Shown here: positions 6,149 through 8,357 of the stretch, piece by piece | Numbering within the stretch: position 1 is the stretch's first letter | Layout: every line of letters begins with the position of its first letter | Assembly (NCBI GenBank): GCA_020184695.1 | Contig: JAANOX010000205.1 | Coordinates: forward strand, 434,001 to 498,000 | DNA: 64,000 nt | Direction: 5' to 3' | Source: Histomonas meleagridis 2922-C6/04-290x | Lineage: Eukaryota; Protista; Parabasalia | The notes under the pieces: generated by a model | Database searches by the model: none | What the model was told of the DNA's origin: nothing | The model's input: the letters and a program-made list of their open reading frames with translations, nothing else | Program-made: the position numbers and the translations under genes

Positions 6149-6556
6149 TTATTCATCTTCAAGTGTTTTAAGCTGTTCTTCAATTAATTGTACAAGATAT
6201 GGTGTACGGTCATAAGTACATAAATTGAGTTGTTTGCCAAGTTCTCTGCGATTTAATTCTATTTCGGGATGTTGAGATTCGTATTTAAGAACACTTGGAG
6301 CAAACTTGAAACCTGCTGATTGTAAGAATTCAAGAACCAAAAGATATTGAAGTTCTTTATCTCCATCAACTGGAATGCTTGGAAATGCTTGAAGTTCTGG
6401 TTGTGTTTCATCAAGAATATGACGAGCTGCTATTTTGGCTAATTCTTGAGCTTCACCAAGCACCTTCTCCTTAATTCCTTTTTTCTCTACAAGCTCTTCG
6501 AGTTCATGTACAACTTCTTGTTGTGCATCATTGACAAACTGATCCATCCAAGACAT
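6149..6556 (-). CDS. LisH-motif protein (FOP/FOPNL-like)
   Basis: 135-aa ORF with YLLVLEFLQSAGFKFAPSVLKYE, a LisH consensus. It lies tail-to-tail with SmD2, 19 bp apart. Confidence 0.65.
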   Translation of the reverse strand: MSWMDQFVNDAQQEVVHELEELVEKKGIKEKVLGEAQELAKIAARHILDETQPELQAFPSIPVDGDKELQYLLVLEFLQSAGFKFAPSVLKYESQHPEIELNRRELGKQLNLCTYDRTPYLVQLIEEQLKTLEDE

Positions 6557-6873
6557 TTTTTTCTCTAATAATTATTAACGTCCTTTAATTGAATGATTTA
6601 CAAATTCAAAAAGAATTCTCTAAAATTAAACCTGTATATAAACTCGTACAGTATGTGTAGGAACTCTAACTTATACCACAAGATCATTGCTTTTCTATAG
6701 CCATTTATTTGTAAGACAACACATTTTGATCATCGATATCATCAACACATCCTAATCAACAAAATTAGTACAAAGCCTCAGATACAAAAATAATCACACT
6801 AGAAAACTATTTTTAAGGATTTAAAAAAGCTTTGGGAAAACATTGTACAAAAGAATAATCAAAAATTTTGGCA

Positions 6874-7012
6874 AATGGCAGTCGAAAGTGATAGTCACTT
6901 GCGGTTCTGCTTCAGAGCCTTGTTTATGGATACATGTGGAGTTTCAATGAAGCATCGCTGAAGCTCATAGCCGTTGTATCCGAATGGCGGACCAAACCGC
7001 AAAAGTGCCGTT
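6874..7012 (+). ncRNA. Candidate structured non-coding RNA of unknown family
   Basis: 66/139 GC (47%) in AT-rich intergenic DNA, with five nested helices, a potential pseudoknot, and G-U pairs that favour the + strand. See findings. Confidence 0.45.
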
Positions 7013-7064
7013 ATTCAATTTGACGAACGTTAAAAAAATTATTTCAAAACAAAAACAATAACAT

Positions 7065-8357
7065 TTATAAAACAAAATTTAGTTTCGCTAGTGAGCGAAA
7101 TTCTATTGGTGGCAATCTTGGATGTATTATATTTAATTGTGGGTTTTGGAAATGTATTGGCGCATTAATTTGTTGTTTTGATTTTATCTTCGCTTGTGAC
7201 ATCATATGTCTTTTATTAAATTCGATTACTCTCTGTGCAGCCATTTTTCTTGTATCAGAATTGTTGTCTGGTTGCTTATCTGTTTTTTGATTATTTAATG
7301 AGAAAGGAATTACATAATTATTAACCTTCTGTACCCCAATAGATGTATATGATAGGTTTTCTTTCATATAAGGCTTTGATTGTTTGTATTTTTGAGAATT
7401 TTTGGCTTCTGTCGCAAAAAGTGCAAACGGTTTTGATCGGTCTGTTTTCTCCCATATCAAATCCTGTTGATGCAGAAATTGGAATGCCGGCGATTTCAAC
7501 GCCTCGTCTGCTGTTATCCTGTCATTTGGGTCGTATACGAGTAATTTCTCTATGAGGTCAATGATTGGCTGACTAACATTTGGGAGTAAATCCCGAAATG
7601 ATTGTTTCTGCTTTTGTGGAAATGCCATACTAACATTATTACTTTGGATTTTAGCAAGAAGACTCTTAGATGGAGTACCTAAGATTGCGTGGATTTTGTT
7701 TAATTGATCCAGCTGATGCTTTCCTGGAAATAATGGCTTTCCTGTAAGAACTTCATATAATACACAGCCAATGGCCCATACATCTACAGCAGGTCCGTAA
7801 ATCCCTGATGTAAGAATACATTCAGGAGCTCTGTACCATCGAGTTGCTACATAATCTGTGAATCTGACTTTGTTAGCAATAGAACTCACTGAACCAAAAT
7901 CAGTAAGCTTTAGCTCTAATGTCTGTGAATTGATTAAGCAGTTCTCTGGCTTGACATCACGATGAAATATTCCGCGAGAATGAACATATGATATTGCTTT
8001 TGTAAGTTGGTAAGTTATTAAAAGCGCATCGAATTCTGGAATCGGTGCTTTTGCTTTGGAAATGTATTCGTATAAATTCATTTCCATGAGTTCTAAAATG
8101 AGTGCAACATGTCCACTTTGTGAGTCATACATTAAAGAACGTAAGTTGATAATATTTGGATGTTTCGAAAGTGTGCGAAGTGCAGCGACTTCGGTGAGTT
8201 GTTTAACATCTTCAAAAGATCGATAGCGTTTCTTTAATCTTTTTTCTGCATAGAATTGTTGATCCTTCAATGACTTGACCTTGTATACATCGGCAAATGA
8301 GCCTTCCCCGAGTTTTTGTATGATACGAAACTCATTTAAGGATTGCCCATCTATCAT
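7065..8357 (-). CDS. CMGC protein kinase, MOK/MAK/ICK type
   Basis: LGEGSFADV, HRDVKPEN, DFG, TDYVATRWYRAPECILTSG (TxY activation loop) and SGHVALILELMEMNLYE resemble MOK. Confidence 0.9.
   Translation of the reverse strand: MIDGQSLNEFRIIQKLGEGSFADVYKVKSLKDQQFYAEKRLKKRYRSFEDVKQLTEVAALRTLSKHPNIINLRSLMYDSQSGHVALILELMEMNLYEYISKAKAPIPEFDALLITYQLTKAISYVHSRGIFHRDVKPENCLINSQTLELKLTDFGSVSSIANKVRFTDYVATRWYRAPECILTSGIYGPAVDVWAIGCVLYEVLTGKPLFPGKHQLDQLNKIHAILGTPSKSLLAKIQSNNVSMAFPQKQKQSFRDLLPNVSQPIIDLIEKLLVYDPNDRITADEALKSPAFQFLHQQDLIWEKTDRSKPFALFATEAKNSQKYKQSKPYMKENLSYTSIGVQKVNNYVIPFSLNNQKTDKQPDNNSDTRKMAAQRVIEFNKRHMMSQAKIKSKQQINAPIHFQNPQLNIIHPRLPPIEFRSLAKLNFVL

Follow-up and report, generated by a model that had tools for sequence, protein, structure and literature searches.

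The window analysed here is a stretch of 64,000 nucleotides of Histomonas meleagridis DNA (C205:434001-498000), and the genome searched along with it is an AT-rich parabasalid genome of 43 Mb in 281 contigs. Within the window, a spacer of 508 nt separates two minus-strand genes, one for a FOP/LisH-type protein and one for a MOK-like kinase, and holds the element under study (Table 1). This placement agrees with a preliminary description of the locus, which had taken positions 6874-7012 as a plus-strand structured RNA with a pseudoknot and switch-like alternative pairings. The GC-rich island noticed there is also evident, the GC content being 0.49 at 6900-6999 versus 0.22-0.32 around it. Beyond the FOP gene, and tail-to-tail with it, lies an LSM-domain gene (window:5767-6129, plus strand); the same arrangement occurs on the orthologous contig L002 (L002:943-1299), and this LSM/FOP synteny is absent from the next-closest relatives (L003, L004 and Trichomonas vaginalis L053). 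On the other side, a perfect 7-bp hairpin, TTTCGCT-AGTG-AGCGAAA (window:7081-7098, plus strand), lies within the final codons of the kinase and has a weak Rfam match to the bacterial sRNA isrJ (E 0.12) that is almost certainly due to chance.

Table 1. Features at the FOP-kinase spacer, with positions counted in the window.
Feature	Position	Strand	Basis or remark
FOP/LisH-type gene	6149-6556	-	84 homologs across parabasalids
Conserved non-coding block (whole unit)	6858-7037	n/a	86% identity to L002:41-227; single-copy
T-run (U5; U6 in L002), possible Pol III terminator	6861-6865	-	conserved block ends a few bases beyond; with flanking bases Sm-like AAUUUUUGA
ANA trinucleotide one base after second hairpin	6866-6868	-	AAA; AUA in L002; not canonical ACA
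Second hairpin of proposed minus-strand RNA	6870-6919	-	minus-strand MFE in both species; both-strand consensus fold
H-box-like ANANNA in hinge	6920-6925	-	AAACAA; ACACAA in L002
First hairpin of proposed minus-strand RNA	6928-6981	-	predicted on both strands, both species
First hairpin, lower stem	6928-6934/6975-6981	-	invariant in L002
First hairpin, internal loop ("pocket")	6967-6974 + 6935-6938	-	invariant in L002
First hairpin, upper stem	6939-6945/6960-6966	-	invariant in L002
First hairpin, tip	6947-6959	-	variable; holds the five substitutions of the hairpin
Initiator-like CCATT (TCATT in L002)	6983-6987	-	proposed start A6985, judged from sequence
Promoter-like region of proposed minus-strand gene	6986-7037	-	enriched promoter words
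Word CGGTTTGGTCC (Myb/M3-type promoter word)	6989-6999	-	genome count and L130 promoter
MOK-like CMGC kinase gene	7065-8357	-	protein search

The spacer was compared with that of one orthologous contig, L002 from an ENA metagenome, which encodes a FOP protein 97% identical to that of Histomonas and on which the LSM gene is also syntenic. Within the block, 156 of 182 alignment positions are identical, while in the same alignment the flanking parts of the spacer reach only 45.5% (left) and 33% (right); the core at 6870-6981 is 90% identical. The conserved unit is accordingly wider than the boundaries 6874-7012 drawn earlier. Between the two FOP genes, 23 of 52 four-fold sites differ (44%) and 52 of the 57 coding differences fall at third positions, and with divergence this heavy the spacer outside the block can hardly be aligned. 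Each of the six frames of the block is interrupted by stops in one or both species, and the plus-strand ORF of 28 codons shows 10 non-synonymous changes and a single synonymous one, together with a shifted stop; a coding remnant was rejected for these reasons. The contrast in identity between block and flanks, the stops and the pattern of changes in the ORF all argue for purifying selection at the nucleotide level on a non-coding sequence. As judged from this pair of sequences, the block is a real, selectively constrained and unannotated non-coding element.

The block is single-copy in the 43-Mb genome, since both BLAST and the covariance model R1 recovered the locus itself and no paralog. The search for orthologs at syntenic MOK-kinase/LisH loci, as proposed earlier, was successful in one case, L002, which kept the block, but in the more distant parabasalids it was not recovered: BLAST, nhmmer and the covariance model found no such element at the FOP-gene loci of L003, L004/5 and T. 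vaginalis L053, nor at the kinase-ortholog loci L037-39. In the JGI metagenomes a 20-mer anchor gave no match, and the 60 matches of a 17-mer anchor were all chance matches with a flank identity of 25-36%. In an ENA metagenome scaffold (L056:1-791), the terminal ~100 nt of a parabasalid FOP gene are fused to GC-rich sequence of bacterial appearance; the scaffold is probably an assembly chimera. No Rfam model gave a gathering-score match anywhere in the window, and on 6560-7120 only chance-level matches appeared at E<=10; a tRNA search with ARAGORN found none. A literature string search for four 16-17-mers of the block was likewise without a match, nor is there a related sequence in the supplementary material of the paper on Trichomonas snoRNAs. 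The notion of a lineage-specific ncRNA outside the known families, put forward in the preliminary description, fits these observations: the element is under selection, non-coding and single-copy, matches no Rfam family and was found in Histomonas and one close relative only. Non-coding RNAs of parabasalids are barely catalogued, and none has apparently been described for Histomonas in the searchable literature; a conserved, unannotated small RNA gene would enlarge the parabasalid inventory.

All 39 base pairs listed for the helices of the earlier structure can form in the Histomonas sequence, and the plus strand of 6874-7012 folds at -47.7 kcal/mol (z -3.42), none of 200 shuffles being as good, and is thus more stable than shuffled controls; the minus strand of the same segment folds at -35.8 kcal/mol (z -1.56). 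In L002, however, helices P1, P2 and P5 of that structure lose one pair each and P6 loses two of six, and a one-sided change occurs once (U-G to U-A in P1), whereas compensatory double changes are not seen. The GGAUAC/GUAUCC pairing, formerly regarded as a pseudoknot, is in every fold the ordinary nested lower stem (6928-6934 with 6975-6981) of a long hairpin.

The consensus fold of either strand over both species consists of two hairpins, at 6870-6919 and 6928-6981, which are numbered here in the order of a minus-strand transcript. The 26 alignment differences between Histomonas and L002 are sharply clustered, with invariant runs of 18-27 nt between the clusters. One cluster takes in all three loop bases of the second hairpin (6892-6894) and the adjacent 6900, another the hinge (6924 and 6926), and a third consists of five tip bases of the first hairpin; further differences are at 6987-6989, 7008 and 7010, in a 2-nt indel after 7012 and at a few bases of both ends. 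All 11 substitutions in the two-hairpin core (6870-6981) are thus located in loops or the hinge, and both arms of the second hairpin, 22 nt each, are invariant. When the Histomonas sequence is folded on its own, the minimum free energy (MFE) structure of the minus strand is exactly the two-hairpin fold, with 3 of the 11 substitutions at paired bases (P 0.028), whereas on the plus strand the first half folds differently and six of the 11 are at paired bases (P 0.25). Variation avoids the stems of the two hairpins in this comparison of two sequences, a number from which covariation cannot be shown.

The duplicated words pointed out earlier do allow alternative pairings within the Histomonas sequence, but none of the alternative helices is supported by L002, and conserved, mutually exclusive helices are not found; nor is there evidence for cis-action on a neighbouring mRNA. 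The kinase stop is directly followed by UAAA and the kinase mRNA therefore probably ends before the block, and the start of the FOP gene is 300 nt away across unconserved DNA. A minus-strand micro-ORF of 14-18 codons, with its ATG at 6968 (17 nt after the start proposed below), is present in both species with two synonymous changes and two conservative replacements; its stop differs between them, however, and conservation is higher over the 50 nt that follow it than within the reading frame. Both a cis-acting switch and a micro-ORF peptide are thus considered very improbable.

The orientation of the block is less evident than its conservation. The plus strand, chosen in the preliminary description, would give a structured non-coding RNA of ~180 nt, to which no function is assigned, starting at the initiator-like TCAAA (6859-6863), ending near the UAAA and A-rich stretch at 7031-7040 and forming stem-loops at 6870-6919, 6928-6981, 6982-7016 and 7020-7033. 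In Histomonas and L002 alike, each of its hairpins is 1.4-4.8 kcal/mol more stable than the minus-strand counterpart, in line with the z-score of 6874-7012 given above, and four to five G-U pairs form on the plus strand only. In the small 3' hairpin at 7020-7033, one U-A pair has become A-U by a double compensatory change and one G-U pair has become A-U. The two ends of the block are marked by an HCAHW-type word and UAAA, which correspond to the start and poly(A) signals of parabasalids. These signals are, however, motifs of low information in AT-rich DNA. The G-U argument, on which the original strand assignment had drawn, lacks significance: four plus-strand G-U pairs would turn into C-A mismatches if read from the minus strand, against a single position in the reverse sense, which is too few. 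When the entire block of L002 is folded, the z-score of the plus strand is -1.0 and does not surpass that of the minus strand, and the upper part of the helix at 6982-7016 is lost there; the single-sequence fold is contradicted by the six substitutions at its paired bases; and the invariant 18-nt run at 6990-7007 consists of promoter words of this genome and is not an obvious RNA feature. The "Sm-like" AAUUUUGG seen earlier on the plus strand becomes AAUAUUGG in L002, and here the minus strand reads A-U5-G-A in Histomonas and A-U6-G-A in L002. A plus-strand RNA is possible, but doubtful.

Promoter words were collected from positions -50 to -1 of 86 genes in 264 kb, comprising the window and the 10-kb pieces L117-L136 (C205:500001-890000). 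ACGGTT and CGGTTT are enriched 14-17-fold in these upstream regions, and AAACGT and AAAGTG about 6-fold. The promoter hexamers of the 86 genes sit at about -20 to -35, and AAAGTGNC is often found 10-16 nt before the ATG. In minus orientation, the region 6986-7037 holds CGGTTT, an ACGGTT-like and an AAACGT-like word, and TTGAAT, words that are enriched 6-17-fold; the minus strand there reads CACTTTTGCGGTTTGGTCCGCCATTC. A gene on L131 carries CACTTTTACGGTTT 4-17 nt before its ATG, and this CACTTTT+RCGGTTT arrangement is that of the block. In another gene, on L130, CGGTTTGGTCCTGCC stands 24 nt before the ATG in the orientation of the gene and shares with the block the 11-mer CGGTTTGGTCC, of which the whole genome has 17 copies versus three of the reversed control. 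Furthermore, AACGTT followed by TTGAAT is found both in the block and upstream of all three U2 genes. The composite promoter pattern is not specific, since it is found within ORFs as well, and the plus strand too carries a canonical word, AAAGTGCC at 7002, with no ORF behind it.

The last observation bears on a different explanation, according to which the block is a regulatory module acting as DNA and yields no stable RNA, its Myb/M3-type sites and promoter words driving or insulating the neighbours or a kinase antisense transcript. The presence of promoter-type words in both orientations is in its favour, and clustered GCGGTT/CCGTT sites had already been named as an alternative in the preliminary description. 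The promoter words, however, account for only about 6986-7037, and the core next to them keeps its 90% identity, its invariant runs of 21-27 nt forming two inverted repeats. That exactly the loops and the hinge vary is the signature of hairpins and not of a cluster of sites, and the genuine promoters of the three U2 paralogs have only short islands in common. A module of this kind is held to be distinctly unlikely.

Several features of the minus strand indicate where a transcript might begin and end. The CCATT of Histomonas and the TCATT of L002 at 6983-6987 both match the initiator (Inr) consensus HCAHW of T. vaginalis (PMC7370421). Directly before the first hairpin stands GGTCCGCCATTC, which matches at 11 of 12 positions the GGTCGGCCATTC that directly precedes the RNase MRP RNA gene, and the RNase P gene of Histomonas has GGGCCAATTGT at the corresponding place. 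At the other end, the conserved block stops a few bases beyond the T-run, after a shared GATTATT; in Histomonas, the genes for RNase MRP, RNase P and U6 are likewise followed by T-runs. Because of the promoter words, the MRP-like start context, the T-run at the end of the block, the positions of the boxes described below and the pattern of substitutions, the block is, with moderate probability, read from the minus strand, opposite to the original proposal. A promoter of ~50 bp (7037-6986) with Myb/M3-type words and the initiator-like CCATT would then direct transcription from near 6985, and an RNA of ~123 nt would end in the T-run at 6865-6861. Such a unit of Myb/M3-type words, CCATT start and T-run would offer a picture of small-RNA transcription in Histomonas.

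[quoted passage not shown] In contrast, the block has no sequence or structural homology to these RNAs, whose genuine genes lie elsewhere in the genome (94 and 97 bits). A homolog of either was rejected, RF00030 and RF00009 giving no match at E<=10 and local alignment giving z-scores of 1.5 and -0.3.

Read from the minus strand, the putative RNA would consist of a 4-nt leader, hairpin 1, an ANANNA hinge, hairpin 2 and an ANA-UUU tail, which is the layout of the H/ACA snoRNAs and scaRNAs. The likeness includes the length (~120-125 nt), the order of hairpin, hinge, hairpin and tail, seen in the minus-strand MFE structures of both species and in the consensus fold, the ANANNA in the hinge and an ANA one base after the second hairpin. 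The hinge reads AU-AAACAA in Histomonas and AC-ACACAA in L002, and the plus strand has no such motif there; the tail reads A-AAA-UUUUU and A-AUA-UUUUUU, respectively. Both boxes occur on the minus strand only, although ANANNA carries little information in A-rich DNA. All three substitutions in the hinge and tail (6924, 6926 and 6867) spare the consensus adenines, 6867 being the free middle position. Hairpin 1 begins with a lower stem of 7 bp, opens into an internal loop (8+4 nt) and closes again in an upper stem below the variable tip. The distance from its upper stem to the H-like box is 13 nt, which would place a target about 14 nt from the box, and the conserved internal loop at ~14 nt from the hinge box is a further likeness to H/ACA RNAs. 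The loop of hairpin 2 is ~10 nt from the tail box, which does not fit the guide-pocket distance. One usable pocket among two stems is what has been reported for all H/ACA candidates of Trichomonas and Giardia, and T. vaginalis has both one- and two-stem Tv/ACA RNAs (PMC3228867). When both strands of the 264 kb were scanned for this layout with a TTT behind it, in a search designed after the locus had been seen, only the locus itself and one match inside the LSM coding region were found.

The Cbf5/dyskerin complex would presumably bind such an RNA, with the target uridine placed in the conserved loop of hairpin 1. Targets for the pocket were sought in the rDNA and in U2, U4, U5, U6, RNase MRP and RNase P RNAs. 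Nothing above shuffles was obtained in the rDNA, either as an rRNA antisense match or as an H/ACA target. For the invariant pocket ACGGCUAU / CACA, the single best target was the bracketed U in GUG[U]AGUAUCUGU of U2. The match comprises 10 pairs (3+7) with one mismatch, and shuffled guides equal its score in 4% of cases for the small-RNA set and in 16% for all targets. In U2 snRNA, GUG[U]AGUA is the sequence that recognises the branch site, and its bracketed uridine would be the best candidate target; with a match this weak, it is a lead and not a finding. In vertebrates, U92/SCARNA8 guides pseudouridines in the branch-site region of U2, and in yeast the pseudouridylation of the branch-site recognition sequence of U2 is carried out by a stand-alone enzyme. 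If the lead were true, it would mean RNA-guided modification of the reader of the branch site in the spliceosome of a deep-branching, intron-poor eukaryote.

The differences from H/ACA RNAs are, however, considerable. The tail is AAA or AUA rather than ACA and is followed by a T-run resembling a Pol III terminator, an rRNA target is lacking and the match to U2 is short, the minus-strand stems carry C-A mismatches, and the block has no sequence similarity to the H/ACA families of Rfam. The assignment to this class is weakened by the non-ACA tail, the distance of the hairpin 2 loop, the C-A mismatches in the stems and the lack of an rRNA target. A single-copy small RNA gene on the minus strand, with a promoter of its own and an architecture of the H/ACA guide type, may nevertheless be put forward tentatively as the best of the readings considered, plausible rather than probable. 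Somewhat unlikely is an undescribed type of small RNA confined to the Histomonas lineage, either a Pol III-terminated, ANA-tailed guide to the branch-site region of U2 or a structured RNA without a family.

A minus-strand RNA of yet another class, specific to the Histomonas lineage and either Sm-binding and snRNA-like or La-bound and made by Pol III, would account for the conserved Sm-type site A-U5/6-G-A at its 3' end, which resembles the site of Histomonas U4, as well as for the T-run and a start context like that of the MRP and RNase P genes. The tail that is not ACA and the want of a convincing guide target also point in this direction, as does the fact that Rfam finds U2, U4, U5, U6, MRP and RNase P elsewhere in the genome and no U1. 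With the Sm-class snRNAs U1, U2, U4 and U5 the block shares, besides this site, its low copy number and its size range. Unlike them, it has no Rfam match (U1, U2, U4, U5, U11, U12, U4atac and U7; E<=10 on 6560-7120), no complementarity to a 5' splice site or branch site, and no hairpin 3' of the site; the Sm-type motif RAU3-6GR lies between stem-loops in these RNAs, whereas here a hairpin precedes it and none follows, and conservation ends there. A snRNA-type promoter was also tried and rejected: the resemblance by eye (ACGGYTATGAG..TGAAAC) is striking, but a profile of four U2/U4 upstream regions did not hit this locus even at E<=100, and the CGGTTRT..GATAA..TTTGTTGC element of the Histomonas U2 and U4 genes is absent from the block. 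An RNA of this other class is considered unlikely.

Further small-RNA classes were also considered for the block. A C/D box snoRNA was rejected, the box-like words not being conserved between Histomonas and L002, and so was a SECIS or K-turn reading of an AUGA word, in which the partner GA is missing by inspection. As for telomerase RNA, the block has no template-like repeat, and no telomere repeat was found at 20 contig ends. The block is likely a new, snoRNA-like gene candidate and not a riboswitch or ribozyme.

Elsewhere in the genome, Rfam models matched U2 (three copies), U4, U5, U6, RNase MRP and RNase P, and the U1 model gave no match at E<=10 in the whole genome (G000); the U1 of Histomonas must be divergent. 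The three U2 genes (L011, L012 and L013) and the U4 gene (L006:~1425-1458) share an upstream sequence, CGGTTRTnnGATAAnnTTTGTTGC..TGAAA, about 50-76 nt before the RNA, which is likely the proximal sequence element of Histomonas snRNA genes. A near-identical element of 30 nt follows both U5 (L009:~1611-1641, C117) and U6 (L014:~1612-1645, C14). It reads GGTTCGA(A)TT(A/C)ACTGATGTATC(A/G) and ends in 7-8 T residues; its beginning resembles a tRNA T-arm, and small RNAs of this genome may use it as a common signal for 3' processing or termination.
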